Assembly (NCBI GenBank): GCA_024704765.1
Contig: JAKMXF010000014.1
Coordinates: 35,242 to 99,241, forward strand
Reading direction: 5' to 3'
Length of the DNA stretch: 64,000 nt
Origin: Oopsacas minuta
Taxonomy: Eukaryota > Animalia > Porifera
Positions 48,636 to 57,400 of this stretch are shown here, one piece after another. A program made the position numbers and the translations under genes. The notes under the pieces were generated by a model. That model did no database searches. It worked only from the letters and a program-made list of their open reading frames with translations, and was not told the origin of the DNA. Positions within the stretch are counted from its first letter, which is position 1; every line of letters starts with the position of its first letter.

Positions 48636-48877
48636 AAATTGAACATTTTTCATTGTGACAGGTTTCCTAGATTTGGATAATATCCCAAGCTAATACAGTG
48701 AAACTTGAGACGGGTGATGCACATATCAAAGTCATTCATCAGGCCCCGATGCTATCATTGATAATATAATGAATGTATTTGGCTCTGTTTATCCTCAGTA
48801 TTTAGCATTCCATATTTAAAATTTAAAACATGTAAACATATACAAACATTACACTGTATTACAATATTATTAATCAA

Positions 48878-49312
48878 TCAATAGTATTCATAGTGTTGTA
48901 TTTGACCCAGGGTATTAAAATAATTATAATGATAACGCCACTCATATCCTTCATAGAACTGTATTTCCCTTAATAAATTCAGTTCCTCTTCTTTCAACTC
49001 GTCTCTATCTTTCTCCAGCCTTTCGATCTCTTTTACATATCTTAATTCTTCCTTCTTCTTTTTATCGTTAAATCTCTTGGATGATAATCTATTCTTCTCC
49101 AAATATCTCATAATTTTTATACATTCAATTGATTTCTTACTAACTTTTCTATCTCTCTCAAGTTTCCTAATAATGTTTAAATACATTTTCTTGTTAAAAT
49201 GATCAATCCTCTCTCTTATGATATCAGAATTCTTTAATTCTATTTTATTGCTATTAGTCATATATTCTTCGTATATTTCATCTTTCAGTATATATTTCAG
49301 ATAATTATCCAT
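48878..49312 (-). CDS. Divergent bZIP-like protein, copy 1
   Basis: First ATG at 49312 (the ORF track starts at a TTG at 49360). Basic region YLEKNRLSSKRFNDKKKK followed by a heptad Y-L-L-L-Y zipper. The true 5' end is uncertain. Confidence 0.6.
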   Translation of the reverse strand: MDNYLKYILKDEIYEEYMTNSNKIELKNSDIIRERIDHFNKKMYLNIIRKLERDRKVSKKSIECIKIMRYLEKNRLSSKRFNDKKKKEELRYVKEIERLEKDRDELKEEELNLLREIQFYEGYEWRYHYNYFNTLGQIQHYEYY

Positions 49313-51099
49313 TAGTGCTAAATATTCTTTGTTGTGATTGTTTGTTAATTCAGAGTTCAAATCAACTCTTTTTATAGTATTGAGTTTATACCCCCCCGGA
49401 AACGAGAATTAATCAAGTACTGAAGAGTTTATTCCCTTGTACGTTGTTCGAGTTAGATGTCCCTTGTAATTAATAGGTAATGATGTCATAATATTAGAAT
49501 CGTATTTCAATTTGTACCCACATTGTTATTCATATTGAATTTCTCTAAGCAGTGAAATTAATTAGTTTGTAACTAAATACTCCAACAACCAGATGACTTT
49601 ATTTTGAGGAGTTTTGGGTCTTTCACGAACTATTCAGAATAGATAAACAATCAATCAACAGTTATAGAAATTGTTTAAAGAATATTTGTGTTGCAGTCTG
49701 AATATACATCAGTAGGATATACCCTGGTCAGGGCCGCCAAGAGGGGGGCAATTGCCCTAGGGCCCGGGAAGTTAGGGGGATCACATGGACTATATTCGCA
49801 GTGATAGAATAATGGATAAATCTGTAAAATAATAGCGGGAAAATAGAGATCGAATTGTTTCAACTCGTTTGTATGCATGCATACTCGTACTAACACATAT
49901 TTAGGATATTGTATAGTAGTATATTTGTAGATTGAATATTACTGGTTCAGTCGACAGACTGAGAATCAGCCCGTGTCATTTACCTGTTTTTTTAAGGGGA
50001 TTACGCCTCCCATCGACCGCGAATTAATTTCGGTCCCTGTGTCTGAGCATGATTTCAGGTTAATATACAATGCCTAGCGGCTAAATACAACAATCAGGGC
50101 TATAAGGTAGTAATACGTAGAGCAAATCCAACAAAATATCTGACCTTACGACACAAATTACGCTGTAAAAGATCTTACACAACCAGGGGTGTATTGCTAA
50201 GTATAAAAGTAAGGGAACATTCCCCTACACTAAATTTGTTGAAGGGGAGTGTTCCTTATGTTGTATAATCGTCCTCTTTTGATATCCTAGTTTTCCAGGC
50301 TTATCTACATCAACATCTTATGAAATACAAGATATTTGCACTAATTTTGGAAAATTCACAGTAAAAACGTGGATGCCATCATATTTAGTACTTTTTAGCT
50401 GAAACTCGAAGGAACATAAGCATTTACACCCCCCCATACACCCCTGAACACAACTCCAAGCAGGGCTGTATCCACGCTAATCCAACCGAAATCTGTTCAG
50501 GCAACTCTAATAGTCAATATTCCCTTGGGTATAATCTGTCCTAGGGCAGATTATACCCAGTATATTATAATGGGAAATCTTCTGTAAATCCGTTATTCTG
50601 TAAATAATACTTATAAATGTTGTGTAATTGTTTACTCATTCTTGAGATTTGTGAAAATCCCCAACCCACTAAAACTGTTGAGTCAATACTCAACAGAGAG
50701 TAATTACGTAACTACATACAGCAAGAATGTAATAATATTCAGTTATTGCTGAAATATGATTCTATATTTATTGAATAAACTGGCTAGAATATGTGTTAGG
50801 TTATACAAATAATGTATTATTTATTAAGTCGTAGCTATAGACATATGTAGATTATTAGGGTAATTTCTCCAAATTATACATTATACAATAAATATCGAGT
50901 AGCATCAAATATGATCAGAATTATCGTCCCATCAATAGCAATATAACGAAAATAAAAGAGTCGTTCATTCAAACGAATATTCAGAAGGGAAAATTCTAAA
51001 TTCACATTTCCTGAGAAGGAATATAAACTCAATACTACAAAAAGAGTTGATTTGAACTCTGAATTAACAAACAATCACAACAAAGAATATTTAGCACTA

Positions 51100-51534
51100 A
51101 TGGATAATTATCTGAAATATATACTGAAAGATGAAATATACGAAGAATATATGACTAATAGCAATAAAATAGAATTAAAGAATTCTGATATCATAAGAGA
51201 GAGGATTGATCATTTTAACAAGAAAATGTATTTAAACATTATTAGGAAACTTGAGAGAGATAGAAAAGTTAGTAAGAAATCAATTGAATGTATAAAAATT
51301 ATGAGATATTTGGAGAAGAATAGATTATCATCCAAGAGATTTAACGATAAAAAGAAGAAGGAAGAATTAAGATATGTAAAAGAGATCGAAAGGCTGGAGA
51401 AAGATAGAGACGAGTTGAAAGAAGAGGAACTGAATTTATTAAGGGAAATACAGTTCTATGAAGGATATGAGTGGCGTTATCATTATAATTATTTTAATAC
51501 CCTGGGTCAAATACAACACTATGAATACTATTGA
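51100..51534 (+). CDS. Divergent bZIP-like protein, copy 2 (identical to copy 1)
   Basis: Same translation as 48878-49312; the frame is open upstream to 50956, so an upstream exon is possible. Confidence 0.6.
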   Translation: MDNYLKYILKDEIYEEYMTNSNKIELKNSDIIRERIDHFNKKMYLNIIRKLERDRKVSKKSIECIKIMRYLEKNRLSSKRFNDKKKKEELRYVKEIERLEKDRDELKEEELNLLREIQFYEGYEWRYHYNYFNTLGQIQHYEYY

Positions 51535-51662
51535 TTGATTAATAATATTGTAATACTGTATGTAATACAGTGTAATGTTTGTATATGTTTACATGACTAA
51601 TATATTAAGAATAAACAAGGCCAAATATCTTCAATATATTATTAATGATAACTTCGGGAGGT

Positions 51663-51713
51663 GATGAATGAATTTGATATGTGCATCTCCCGTACATATC
51701 AAATTCATTCATC
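51663..51713. repeat. Perfect hairpin, 20-bp stem and 11-nt loop
   Basis: gatgaatgaatttgatatgt - gcatctcccgt - acatatcaaattcattcatc. Confidence 0.9.
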
Positions 51714-51985
51714 GGGTCCCAGATAGTGGGAAATTATCTCACTTCCTTTATATTACCAAGTTTGCAACGGAATAGTTCAATATTCGGTTCAACCGAATAT
51801 TATTTGGCGAATAGTTAGGTCTAGGTATTCGATTGGCCCAAACCGAATATCGTCAGTATTCGGTTAGGCTACCATACATAAATACTGGTATTGGGCTTAC
51901 CTATTATATAATGCAACGTCTTTATTTCAAAAATACAAAGATAATCAATTCAGTTCATTTACAAAGAACTCAACCATATAATCTA

Positions 51986-53137
51986 CTAAATGAGAATGCA
52001 GCGCCCTCTACGATTAACACGAGATCTAAATGCAATAGCCACTCTCATTGCTTCTTCAAATACTTGTGTAACTCCTATCTGTGTAAGAGCAGAACATTCA
52101 AAGTAACTAACAGCTCCAATATCTCTCATCATCTCCACACCCTGTGAGTAACTGATTGGAGCAAACTTCTCATTTTCCAGAAGGGTGGTTATCTCTCCGT
52201 CATCTCTCAGGTCTAGCTTAGTCCCCACAAGGATTTTAGGAGTATGAGGACAATAGTACATAACCTCAGGATTCCATTTTACTTTAACATTCTCAAAAGA
52301 GATATGATTTATTAGTGAAAATAAAATTAGTAAAACGTCTGTCTCTCGATATGATAACGGTTTCAGACGATAGGAATTTTCATGATCTTAAAGTGAACAT
52401 ATTCAAATATAAACTATGATAATTTGACTATTAATTAAGTGTTCTAAGTTCTAACCCACCAAAGGTATCCCAAAAAGAAAGACTAACATCTATTCCATCT
52501 ATGGTGTAATCTTCAACTCCCGACCAAAATCTAAGAAAATTCATATACAACTATACGTACAATTTTTCGAGGAGAAATAGAATCATAAATAGGTAACAAG
52601 AAATTTATCGTAGTCCACTTACGCAGGAGTATTGTCAGATGGGAATTTCTTGGTTGTGTAACTGATGAGCAGGGAAGATTTACCTACATCACTGTAAATA
52701 CAAACGAAAATGACAAGAAGACTACTGTAGATCTGAAACTTTAGTTGTATCATTACACGAAATAGTCGTGACCCATGCGCGTACCAGGCCATGTTTTGGG
52801 CCGGTTATTTCCAAGTAAGACAATTACTATTGCAAATACAATATTTTAACGGTAGTACAACTATGATAATCTTATTGGCTTCAACCCTGACCCTGTGCTA
52901 TGTAGTCCTGAAAAACACAAATCCTCGACCACCAAAATACAGTATGTATATATAGGGATAGCGGAGCCGGTACGGCAAGACTGTACAAACTTTGTGTATT
53001 CTCCCTTATATTTAGTTGTCGTCGGAACTCGCCAGACCTCTCACGGTACCAATATATATATTTTTCCAGATTTTCGGTAACGGTATTATTCATTTCGTGA
53101 CATACCTATCTCCAACTATGCAACTTTTTATATTCAT
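51986..53137 (-). CDS. Atypical Rac/Cdc42-like Rho GTPase, 4 exons, 190 aa
   Basis: Exons 53137-53106, 52691-52623, 52530-52460 and 52386-51986 (573 nt, all GT-AG). Protein MNIKSCIVGDSDVGKSSLLISYTT...WDTFDHENSYRLKPLSY.ETDV...LVGTKLDLR...ECSALTQ...RRGRCILI (CAAX). Confidence 0.85.
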
Positions 53138-54474
53138 TACTTGATTGTAGTTGATGTGTGCAGATTGTGGAATCCTAAACCTGTTAAGAAAGAGAAAAAA
53201 TAGATATTTACTGAATGTACCAAGTCTCAAAATCGTTCTCACCCAAAGGGCATTAAAGTAATTATCTACGTCAGCGAGTGTCACCCAGGCCCGCTGAAAC
53301 AAGTTTTTGGGGCCAGAGAAGACCGAATTTGTAGTTACCAAATTTTTCTACCTTGACAATAAATCTCAATTTCGTATTTTGCATAGAGCATTAATCGTTC
53401 CTCATTTTTTGGAGCGAGGTCTCGCTCCGCGGTCCCGCCTTGCAAAGGAACAGTACTCCTACCTTCCCTCCTTACTGAGAAAAAGAGCGCGCTCCTTCAA
53501 AAATGGAGTTGCAGTGCATACAAAAAATGTGTCAAATACGTATAAGCGTGATTACGTAGGTCAGGGTATAAGTAAATTTACATACGGGTTACAACCAAAA
53601 GAACAAATAGTAAGAAGAGTTGAAATTATGTTAATAAATTTGTCTATTTGATTACACAACCAAAGCGACGTAAGCAGACAGACAAGATGAACTTATAGCT
53701 AATATTTACAATTTTACAATATAGACAAAGATGTGAAACAGTAGAAGATTTATATATCAAAGGTACATATCTACACGCCAAAATGTATTCAAATGCCAAT
53801 TTTTTCAATCGGACTACTAGATTTCTCAGGAACGCAGGTACGGAGTTAAGCAAGTCGTACATCCTACATGCCAATAGAGAATCTGTCACGGTTTAACTGG
53901 TCCGGCCCCTGTAGTAGCCCCAGAATATCCTCGGGTATGTCTGGGCTTGTCTACTTCTTACCTAAGTATATTTGAGGACGTGGTATAATCTCGGCAGTTA
54001 CACAGGACCAGTTGTGGTCGCTATTACTGGTTTACCATTTGCAGAACGATCTTTCAGGATCAGCATTGGCGCCCACTAAACTACCAGTGAGTTATTTATG
54101 TCTATGCTTAAGTTCTAAGCCTAATAACGGAATGAACCTCCGGTAAGAGACCTCCCATTTAGCCGGACCAGTTATGGCCAGAGGGGACCAGCTATGGATG
54201 CTACACCTGGTCCCGAACGATTTGTGGCATCCATAACTGGTCCGACCGGAATATTACAGGTGTTATACTAAAAATTATACATTATGCATTGAAAGGTATT
54301 GAAAGCTCAATTAAGATATATTTACACACAAATATGACTCCAAAAACAGTAAATAGATACAAACTATTCATACAAATGTAAAATCTACAAACTATCGGGG
54401 AAATTAATACAATGTTATTAAAATCAGTAATATGAAGTTGGGGTGGTAAGAAAGGTATTCTTTACAGATTTTCT

Positions 54475-57400
54475 TTAGATTGCTTCATACGGATTATAAG
54501 GTGTACTACCGTATACTGGGTTATTCGAGATATGGTCAGATTCATTCTGTACACTTTCATCTTGGAAGAACAGCATATTAGTTCCGTATACTGGATTAGT
54601 GTTGACATCAATTACCAACCTAGTATTACTTACATCTTCATACATCGGGGGTGGATGATCTGGGATATCACTCGCATCACAATATATATTCGCCTTGTGA
54701 GTTGCTCCAAAAGCCCATTGTTTCTTTGATTTGGGTTCCTCAAAAATAGGAGCACCTTTTTTCATTGTATCCAAATCAGAATAGACACTCTCTTCAGTTT
54801 GAAACATGGATTGCTCAAAACCTAGAAATTAAATTCATACTCTTAACTTTTGAGGTTAATAATACTTCATAAACAGAAGCACATACGTGTATATATACTG
54901 TTTAACACCTAAAATGAAGTTTTTCCAAATGCTATTGAGAAATACTCACCAAAATTCGATGCTCCCTCAACGTCTAATTCCTTGGTCTTAACTCTCTCCA
55001 TTGTACTCTTTTCTCCAGCTGTTTTTCTGAACTTGCTACTCACTTGAGAACTACTTGTCGCTGAGGAGGACAAAGTACCACGAGTGCCAGTGGATGGATG
55101 TGTTGGTACTCCAATAGTCTTTCGTTTCTTTAGAATTCCATGAACTTCCCTATTTCTCAACACAACCACAAGCAAGAAAACCAAACCCATAAGACCGTTC
55201 AGAAATACAAATATATACTGGAGTGCTATGTGTCTGATTGTGATGTTAAGGAGTAGAAATAACCACGGGATTCCTAATACCGGAGTTAGTACCAGAGCAG
55301 TGATGAGTGCATCTTTCACTATATTTTTGTGTTCATTGTTTTTGTTTGCACATTTGGCATAAACAATCTTTATAATGGCTATCACAAGTAAGACTGCATT
55401 CACACTCAATATAATTAGTATTGGAGCGATGAATGCCCAAATGACTCCATCTTTATTGAGAAAGCAATGATCAGACTCATTTACATAATAGGAATGTGTA
55501 ATGCTAATGGTTATGGTTGGAATAACTAGTGGAAACAGCCAACCAAACACTATGAGATATGGATATATCTTCTTGGTAGACATCACACCTATAAAAGGAT
55601 AGTTTATACCAGTATCAGTTGATATAAACAGGCTCTAAGAACATTTTTCTAGAACTTTGTGACCATCTATATGATTTTTTGCCGGTTACAAGAACCATAT
55701 CTAGACAAACATTGTATCACGTTAAGTACAACCTTCTAGAAATATTTGTATAATTCACCCAATGATATATAGACTCTATTACTGGTTATATTAACATGTA
55801 GACAGATAGCTTAACTCACTTATAACAAGCTTGAACATTATCAATATTCCGAAACACAGTGTCCAAGTGAAAACTGCAAGCCATGTGTAGTGAAGCATGA
55901 AAGCTATGATCATACAAAGAATTCTATTGAATGTTCCTGTATCTATGCCAAACAAGAATATTCCAGTAGCTAACAGCATAGCAATACAGTAGTTGAAGTA
56001 AATGATGTTTGTCTCTACTTTGAAGAAAGCTTTCCCAGCAATGCAAAATAGGATAAATGATATTATTAGAGATATGAAGGAGACTAAAACTAGAATGTAG
56101 CTGAAGGAATCGAGTATAACTGCTGCTGTATCAGCTTGGGTATCGTATGGAGTAACGAAAACGGCGAAGCTCGTGAAATGGAATGATTGGCATAATGTCA
56201 CTTCAGCTGATTCTTTAACTGTGGTGAGACCGTCAGATACCCAGTTATCCCCATTCAAATATACACATTTATAATTGGAACCTTCAGAACTTGAATTTAC
56301 ATCAAAAGCCAATGTAACCTGTAAATTATATTTTGTATAAATCTCCCTATTACAAAAATTGTTAGTTAATATTTCTTGAATATTAGTTGTAAAAACAGTT
56401 AATAGTTATTCCATTGTAAAAATTAGAGTAGCAATTACCTGGGAACTTAAGTTAACCTTTCCAGTTATCCCTACTATTGTAATTGATAGAATATCACTTG
56501 CTTGATAAGATTGTCCATCATTGGGTGTATTAGCCTGCTGATCATGATATACTATTGATGTACTGATCTAGAGAGAGTAATCAATAAGTAAACTACATAA
56601 CTCAACCATGCCATGGGGCAAATTTATCTACACGGAGTGAGAAATGAAGAATTCTAACTAGATATTCACTAAAGGAAAGTATAAAGAATATATTTTCACA
56701 TTTGGCCACTACTATCTATATGATAAAAGCAGAGGTGTATTTCTAAGTATAAAACTATGGGAACGCTCCAAAGCACTGCCCCCCCCCCCCTCCTCCACTA
56801 AATTTGCGCCTCTTATGTAGTTTAACCGGTGCCTTTTTGATGTCCTAGTTTCAGGCCTTCATCTGGATATCTGGATGGTGATTATTCCGTATTTATTATT
56901 GCGCCAAAATTCAAAATTTCAAAATCCAATTTATTATCATTTGACACTAATTGATGCATGGCCGAGAGAAATATTGCAAAACTCATAGCACTTTAGTATC
57001 TCGACAAAGGTCATTATAATTTTCCGCTGTTTGTCAATTCGATGGGCGTTGTGCTGAATATATTCCGTCCCGGAGTTTTACCTGCCTGTATAGATAGGCT
57101 AATTCTAAGGCACAAAGTGCACTAGTCACTTGTAGTTGCTGCTTATATTTTCGTAATATTTTAGCTTGAACTATTCCCAATTTCCCATCTTATAACAATT
57201 TCCACACTCCTTCTTATCTTTTAGCCCCTCGTTTTTTTTTAACTTGCTTTCGACGTCCGCGGAATACGCTAAAATTACTTACCGCCAATCTTCCATTAAT
57301 TGCCAATTCTTGAGCAACATCAATTGGGAGTTTTAGTGAAACTGGATTATCATCACCTGTTGTTACAGGTAGATCGATTATCTCTTCAGAATCTGTACTA

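Follow-up and report, generated by a model that had tools for sequence, protein, structure and literature searches.

Gene Structure and Annotation

The window analyzed here is a 64-kb stretch of contig JAKMXF010000014.1 from the glass sponge Oopsacas minuta (assembly GCA_024704765.1). By direct reading of the sequence, it contains a Rac-like gene at positions 53137-51986 on the minus strand, with four coding exons separated by GT-AG introns (GTATGT..CAG, GTAAGT..TAG, and GTGGGT..AAG). The coding sequence of 573 nt encodes a protein of 190 aa, a relative of Rac that, judged from its altered motifs, probably does not switch and stays on membranes permanently. The parts of the gene are listed below.

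53106 to 53137, minus strand: coding exon 1, with the ATG at 53137, MNIKSCIVGD and two nucleotides of codon 12 (sequence reading; junction as in the GenBank model)
52623 to 52691, minus strand: coding exon 2 (69 nt), with the P-loop (S)DVGKS and switch I up to NTP(A) (sequence reading; tblastn to Rac1 residues 14-34)
52460 to 52530, minus strand: coding exon 3, with the effector loop FWSG, beta2-beta3, W56, D57, T58, and F59 (sequence reading; tblastn to Rac1 residues 46-60)
51986 to 52386, minus strand: coding exon 4, with D60 (split codon), H61, switch II, TKLD, Rho insert, CSAL, polybasic tail, and CILI; the stop codon is at 51988-51986
53138 to 53180, minus strand: in-frame leader upstream of the ATG, annotated as coding (FRIPQSAHINYNQV); may be 5' untranslated region (LOD99_10020 mapped on the locus)
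53243 to 53253, minus strand: small annotated 5' exon (MPFG), of uncertain reality and unused in the model of the second gene copy described below

The list of ATG-started open reading frames contains only the final 91 aa of the protein, which begin at an internal ATG, as stated in the first-pass annotation, where the gene was assembled by manual splicing. This splicing was reproduced by the GenBank record: exon 4 matched KAI6661353.1 (LOD99_10020, O. minuta, 208 aa) at 100%, and LOD99_10020, encoded on the same contig, has three coding junctions identical to those derived by hand. For the searches, exons were used singly, and the full-length protein was analyzed as KAI6661353.1. This model is longer by 18 N-terminal aa, which derive from the small upstream exon and the in-frame leader. 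The acceptor at 53181/53180 is used by both gene models, LOD99_10020 and LOD99_6469 (the second copy), and the copy 2 model joins it to a different upstream exon; the 18-residue extension is without homolog support. Since Rho GTPases normally begin a few residues before the first strand, the ATG at 53137 is the likelier translation start. With regards to transcription, the O. minuta annotation was produced with BRAKER1 and Augustus using hints from RNA sequencing (RNA-seq) (PMC10280926), and these hints are suggestive of transcription of the Rac-like gene.

Family Assignment and Predicted Structure

Exon 4 matched the Pfam family PF00071 (Ras) with E = 1.7e-19, above the curated cut-off, and exon 2 reached E = 0.0028 and 17.7 bits, under the curated cut-off of 21.6 bits. 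The best matches of exon 4 in the PDB were Rac3/Rac1 (E = 8e-42), followed by Rac2 and then Cdc42. The HMMER ranking of the protein against PDB sequences gave the same order, with 196 bits for Rac3/Rac1, Rac2 next, and 164 bits for Cdc42, and no Rnd chain was found among the best 60 PDB sequences. An AlphaFold2 model built from a 16-sequence alignment showed a Rho G-domain with a mean predicted local distance difference test score of 74.5 and a predicted template modeling (TM) score of 0.75. Both switch regions were modeled with a confidence of less than 50 (residues 31-34 and 59-68), and a helix was placed at residues 121-130 in the Rho insert. In a Foldseek comparison of this model with the PDB, the best 50 matches were all Rac1, Rac2, or Rac3 (TM 0.77-0.89). 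By sequence ranking and predicted fold, the protein is thus a Rho-family member of the Rac type, in agreement with the identity first given to it.

Changed and Retained Motifs

Residues are numbered after Rac1, based on an alignment with 14 Rac and RhoG proteins. In this alignment, the P-loop of the Rac-like protein reads GDSDVGKS and contains the changes G12S, A13D, and T17S. Switch I is one residue shorter, with neither Thr nor Ser following P34, and the effector loop reads FWSG, in which F37 is kept and D38W, N39S, and Y40G are changed. Switch II reads DTFDH, equivalent to A59F, G60D, and Q61H. Retained are G10, G15, K16, F28, W56, D57, T58, TKLD, and CSAL, and the C-terminus comprises a polybasic stretch followed by CILI (..RSRVNRRGRCILI), of which the prenylation is predicted only. 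The Rho insert has no gap relative to Rac1 residues 123-135, and just 2 of its 13 residues match (15% identity). All motif changes named in the first-pass annotation (G12S, A13D, absence of T35, FWSG, A59F, G60D, and Q61H) were recovered, and so were its intact motifs (GKS, TKLD, CSAL, Rho insert, and polybasic-CAAX), with the qualification that the insert is conserved in length and not in sequence.

The missing codon can be assigned to exon 2, since this exon measures 69 nt here and 72 nt in both paralogs described below, whereas exon 3 is of equal length in all three genes. The shortening fits a deletion of T35. The HMMER alignment puts the gap at S41 instead, which turns position 35 into T35A; Thr is absent at this position in both alignments. 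The divergence is unevenly distributed along the protein. Identity to the canonical O. minuta Rac1 is 53% overall, 47% for residues 1-75, 20% for switch I, and 77% for residues 76-122. Residues 1-75 of Rac1 are almost invariant from fungi to vertebrates in the alignment.

Alternative exons restoring GDG, PT, or DTAGQ, which the first-pass annotation had named as an outcome that would speak against it, were not found by tblastn of O. minuta Rac1 against the whole 64-kb window. Matches were obtained for exons 2, 3, and 4 exclusively, exon 1 being too short to register.

A Second Copy and Two Paralogs

The gene exists in two copies and belongs to a graded family, both of which were missed in the first-pass annotation. 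The second copy, LOD99_6469, is 98% identical, falls into the same 90% cluster as LOD99_10020, and lies at the end of contig JAKMXF010000317.1. It is part of a larger duplication:

51869 to 55070, no strand assigned: duplicated segment with the 3' end of an adhesion G protein-coupled receptor (GPCR) gene, the intergenic region, and the whole Rac-like gene; copy at the end of JAKMXF010000317.1 (blastn)

Identity by blastn was 92.5% over 55070-53772 and 98.2% over 53775-51869, and the homology ends 117 bp past the stop codon. Opposite window positions ~53772-53775, about 0.5 kb upstream of the gene, copy 2 carries a 1.3-kb Tc1-like insertion. LOD99_6469 itself (408 aa; L005:1502-4428) is a chimeric model, in which a Tc1-like transposase (HTH and DDE_3 domains) has been joined to the second copy of the Rac-like gene.

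Two further paralogs, LOD99_609 and LOD99_7561, are 64% and 56% identical to the window protein, respectively. They resemble it in the four exons, in G12S, in the loss of Q61, in a CAAX box ending in LI, and in C-terminal motifs, and introns in codons 12, 36, and 60 are common to all three genes. Each of the three has an intact frame, GT-AG splice sites, and a CAAX box. LOD99_609 (P-loop GNSDVGKT, switch II DTADN) differs from the window gene by retaining T35, F37-D38, and A59. LOD99_7561 (P-loop GDSAVGKT, switch II DTLAPH) has retained A13 and differs further by T35R and by a one-residue insertion in switch II. In terms of its motifs, degeneration has gone furthest in the window gene.

In the 3' two-thirds of exon 4 (window 51986-52250 compared with L002:7270-7542 and L003), long stretches of codons are identical and synonymous differences are nearly absent, with 84% DNA identity over 303 nt. 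The synonymous divergence among the paralogs is far greater in exons 1-3 and at the start of exon 4 than in this 3' part, a pattern that suggests gene conversion.

Origin Within Glass-Sponge Rac1

Two maximum-likelihood trees (LG+C20+F+G4) were calculated; they contain no Cdc42, RhoA, Rnd, or RhoH sequences. The four atypical sequences formed one clade, with a support of 99/99 and 100/99 in the two trees, and this clade fell inside the glass-sponge Rac1 clade of O. minuta Rac1, Vazella Rac1, and a further relative (96/86 and 100/98). The branches of the atypical clade are long, and the tool flags long-branch effects. Independently of the trees, the shared codon-60 intron and shared residues (KWNPE, TPKIL, and MM.DIGAV) speak for the placement in glass-sponge Rac1. 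The canonical O. minuta Rac1 gene (LOD99_3558, KAI6653338.1) has introns in codon 12 (phase 2) and codon 60 (phase 1) only, and the Rac-like gene has both of them in the same phases. The exclusion of Cdc42, RhoA, Rnd, and RhoH is based on the PDB ranking and the domain features and not on the trees.

As for the Rho-family phylogeny named as a check in the first-pass annotation, the two trees place the gene inside hexactinellid Rac1, and the independent origin proposed there is borne out by this nesting together with the shared codon-12 and codon-60 introns. From the available sequences, it can be concluded that the atypical clade arose by duplication of a hexactinellid Rac1, independently of Rnd, RhoH, and RhoBTB.

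The branching order was (7561,(609,(window gene, copy 2))), from which a stepwise loss of motifs would follow. G12S and the loss of Q61, found in all three genes, would have come first, followed by A13D and G60D in the window gene and LOD99_609. A59F, the loss of T35, and the FWSG effector loop would have been added last, in the window gene only. T35R of LOD99_7561 is a separate change.

No ortholog outside O. minuta was found in word searches with exon 4, LOD99_7561, and LOD99_609; the foreign matches were canonical Rac1 proteins only (54-62% identity), including one of the glass sponge Vazella. Among 1.84 billion representatives searched with a profile, no foreign ortholog turned up either, the best foreign match being canonical Rac1, and no single-stretch match exceeded about 270 bits.

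Contig ctg27316 of the ENA record ERZ25069837 (L004:5638-6432; 37% GC) carries another gene resembling Rac1, in which the introns in codons 12 and 60 recur. It is 84% identical to O. minuta Rac1, with which it pairs in the tree on a long branch, and carries T35S, G48L, A59T, P69V, and S71C at otherwise invariant sites; it may be a relaxed copy of Rac1.

Selection and Constraint

Between the two copies of the Rac-like gene, 1 of 573 coding sites differs (F to I), as do 13 of 579 intron sites and 17 of 526 upstream sites. The difference between coding sequence and introns was significant in a Fisher test (p = 0.0017), and so was that between coding sequence and all non-coding sequence (p = 1e-4). 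Ratios of nonsynonymous to synonymous substitution rates (dN/dS) were calculated by YN00. For exon 4, dN/dS was 0.27-0.33 against LOD99_609 (dS 0.55-0.67) and 0.28-0.39 against LOD99_7561; against canonical Rac1, synonymous sites were saturated. Exons 1-3, which bear the unusual motifs, gave about 0.2-0.4, a noisy estimate from 54 codons. Splitting the pairwise distances of three taxa by hand left a dN/dS of about 0.3 on the window gene's own branch.

These data bear on the view that the gene duplicated recently and is turning into a pseudogene, with frame and splice sites surviving through lack of time. The missing ortholog outside O. minuta in both types of search, the very long tree branches, the AT-rich codon usage, and the copy that adjoins a Tc1 insertion and is mis-modeled would all suit such a duplicate. 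However, a dS of 0.55-0.67 to the nearest paralog, at a dN/dS of about 0.3, means ample time for frame-breaking changes, and yet all three paralogs have kept their frames, splice sites, and CAAX boxes. In addition, there are about 9-fold fewer exon than intron changes between the two copies. We therefore consider incipient decay decidedly unlikely. Constraint had been named as a check in the first-pass annotation, and the dN/dS of about 0.3 together with the contrast between coding sequence and introns argues that the Rac-like gene is evolving under constraint rather than by neutral decay.

Proposed Mode of Action

The best explanation overall, to which we assign a probability of about 0.6, is a lineage-specific Rac1 paralog belonging to a small clade, the product of which holds nucleotide, neither hydrolyzes nor switches, is prenylated, and offers a new interaction surface. 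Deficient hydrolysis, the loss of switching, and new effectors are what we infer from the motifs alone.

In detail, the Rho G-domain fold would be retained, and guanine nucleotide would most likely still be bound, because the elements that hold it, G1 (GxxxxGKS), F28, D57, G4 (TKLD), and G5 (CSAL), have been preserved. Hydrolysis, whether intrinsic or assisted by the arginine finger of a Rho GTPase-activating protein (GAP), requires G12 and Q61, and T35 and G60 are the two gamma-phosphate contacts of the 'loaded spring' that drives the change of switch I and switch II. As all four residues are lost, no appreciable hydrolysis of guanosine triphosphate (GTP) and no toggling between two conformations would be expected. 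The polybasic-CAAX tail would lead to geranylgeranylation and membrane residence.

Further residues for contact with partners, Y64, H103, and H104, are lost from the Rac-like protein as well. In Rac, D38 and Y40 bind CRIB proteins and other effectors, and Y64, H103, and H104 contact the Rho guanine nucleotide dissociation inhibitor (GDI) and guanine nucleotide exchange factors (GEFs). Since several contact residues for effectors, RhoGDI, and GEFs are gone, the protein would be controlled by abundance and location and not by GEF, GAP, or GDI, and it would act through its remodeled surface. Its manner of action would thus resemble that of Rnd and RhoH, with an independent origin.

Several points weigh against this explanation. 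Rab GTPases normally have Ser at position 12, and the catalytic residue of translational GTPases is a His, so that residual or partner-assisted hydrolysis is possible. The phosphate and Mg2+ site is crowded by D13, F59, and D60, which could abolish nucleotide binding. The dN/dS values are averages over two lineages, and gene conversion in exon 4 may have influenced them. The GC content at third codon positions is 0.30, compared with 0.50 in canonical Rac1, and this low value fits low expression of the gene. Lastly, junction use and expression rest on the BRAKER1 model with its RNA-seq hints (PMC10280926).

If the three substituted residues stopped nucleotide binding altogether, the product would be a nucleotide-free pseudoGTPase serving as a prenylated protein-binding module only. 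Of the five residues that line the site for the beta/gamma-phosphate and Mg2+, three are indeed changed, and the AlphaFold2 confidence of less than 50 in both switch regions would be compatible with an empty site. On the other hand, G15, K16, S17, F28, D57, TKLD, and CSAL have stayed under purifying selection, and the retention of the base-recognition motifs while 53% of residues 1-75 changed is hard to explain without nucleotide binding. We consider this account unlikely.

A working but non-canonical GTPase, in which H61 is catalytic and a dedicated partner supplies the missing groups, as TBC GAPs do for Rabs with Ser12, appears very unlikely. In its favor, the P-loop GDSDVGKSSLL resembles the Rab-type motif GDSGVGKS, and H61 is apparently also present in LOD99_7561, subject to the one-residue insertion in switch II of that protein; the constraint on the sequence would be expected of a working enzyme, too. 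However, without T35 and G60, the protein has neither of the gamma-phosphate contacts, and these residues are near-universal in switching GTPases. Ras with Q61H is hydrolysis-impaired, which weighs against a catalytic H61, and LOD99_609 has N at this position. The non-hydrolyzing, nucleotide-holding Rac1 paralog hence remains the preferred explanation.

Comparison With Known Atypical Rho Proteins

In Rnd and RhoH, loss of the glycine equivalent to G12 and changes in switch II result in GTPase-deficient, expression-controlled proteins (PMC13236570). For better comparison, the Rac-like protein was set against these and other Rho-family members. Canonical Rac1 (LOD99_3558; human RAC1/RAC3) is its best match in sequence and fold and agrees with it in length, Rho insert, and polybasic-CAAX tail. 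However, canonical Rac1 has G12, T35, D38, Y40, A59, G60, and Q61, and all of these are changed in the Rac-like protein, so that the set of switch and effector residues of the Rac subfamily (G12, T35, F37-D38-N39-Y40, and DTAGQ) is not preserved.

Rnd proteins keep T35 and G60, are constitutively GTP-bound, and are extended at both termini, with a farnesyl CAAM box. Unlike them, the Rac-like protein nests in Rac1, and its length of 190 aa, its CILI end, and its position inside the Rac1 clade do not agree with Rnd. Absence of Gly12 and Q61 is shared with Rnd1-3/RhoE, GTPase-deficient proteins that GDI does not bind and whose regulation works through their level and location (PMC13236570).

From RhoH, the Rac-like protein differs by the loss of both T35 and G60 and by its origin inside glass-sponge Rac1 in a sponge host, the tree being one without a RhoH sequence. 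RhoH is a vertebrate-specific, hematopoietic protein with Q61N that keeps T35 and G60, and its P-loop, GDSAVGKT, is the same as that of LOD99_7561. G12S (GDS...) and the loss of Q61 are common to RhoH and the Rac-like protein, and RhoH is GTPase-deficient and controlled by expression (PMC13236570).

RhoBTB proteins are large, with two BTB domains and no CAAX box, whereas the Rac-like protein ends at residue 190 with CILI; its stop codon follows the CAAX box, and the annotated gene that comes next is on the opposite strand. The switch II of RhoBTB also begins with DTF. Its GTPase domain resembles the Rac-like protein in that it is atypical for a Rho domain and its G motifs are altered (PMC7600811).

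By its motifs, the protein would fall among the pseudoGTPases, as the Thr of G2, the Gly and Gln of G3, and G12 are lost while the fold is predicted to be kept; the class is that of Stiegler and Boggon 2020, as cited in PMC13236570.

Atypical GTPase-deficient Rho proteins such as Rnd, RhoH, and RhoBTB are known mainly from cnidarians and bilaterians. A review of Rho GTPases in early-branching animals covers no glass sponge (PMC7600811), neither Rho nor Rac is mentioned in the paper on the O. minuta genome (PMC10280926), and our literature search for Rho GTPases of glass sponges found no paper. As a phenomenon, atypical GTPase-deficient Rho proteins are not new, because Rho paralogs with altered motifs occur in many scattered eukaryotes, and the wider significance is limited accordingly: the representative library contained many such paralogs with altered P-loop and switch II motifs, from a flatworm, a glomeromycete, a chytrid, and Anaeramoeba. 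What is particular here, as far as the sequences tell, is the independent origin in a sponge Rac1, the joint loss of G12, T35, G60, and Q61, and the graded paralogs in one genome. The O. minuta paralogs represent naturally occurring intermediate stages between a normal Rac1 and a protein that lacks all four residues for hydrolysis and switching. This series is still under selection and could be used to ask which functions of the G-domain survive each loss.

Several of the representatives near Rac are tandem fusions of two to four Rho domains, e.g., a 1207-aa Macrostomum lignano protein named caspase-p10-containing.

Adhesion GPCR and Genomic Surroundings

An adhesion GPCR gene (Lectin_C, Ig, GPS, and 7tm_2 domains) lies upstream of the Rac-like gene on the same strand and ends at about window position 54475, which is 1.2 kb from the annotated start of the Rac-like gene. 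The neighborhood described in the first-pass annotation, with the Rac-like gene downstream of the GPCR on the same strand, is therefore accurate. The 3' tail of the GPCR gene is included in the segment duplicated on JAKMXF010000317.1. Neither of the paralog loci, LOD99_609 and LOD99_7561, has a GPCR neighbor; NHL/LRR and carbonic-anhydrase genes are found there instead. Since the genome is compact and the paralogs have other neighbors, adjacency alone is no evidence of coupling, and a functional link to the GPCR was rejected as evidence and kept as a possibility.

On a broader view, glass sponges with their syncytial body might have evolved a Rac family of their own with a stepwise-dismantled switch. 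Its end product would be a nucleotide-insensitive membrane module, which could serve as a constitutive adaptor or could trap Rac regulators, perhaps in concert with the co-duplicated adhesion GPCR. We offer this as a speculation that is unlikely to hold.

LOD99_7561 (L003:1-9285) sits amid three carbonic-anhydrase genes, and NHL-repeat genes occur near both LOD99_609 (L002) and the window gene (L001:15746-17014). Directly downstream of the Rac-like gene, a large inverted repeat occupies window positions 48710-51693. One arm pair, 48853-49390 / 51022-51559 (538 nt), is 100% complementary, and each arm contains one gene of 144 aa. The end of the segmental duplication at 51869 is 176 bp from this inverted repeat. 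Just past the duplication breakpoint, at 51760-51870, the short palindromic motifs AATATTCGGTT / AACCGAATATT recur several times and may represent the end of a mobile element.

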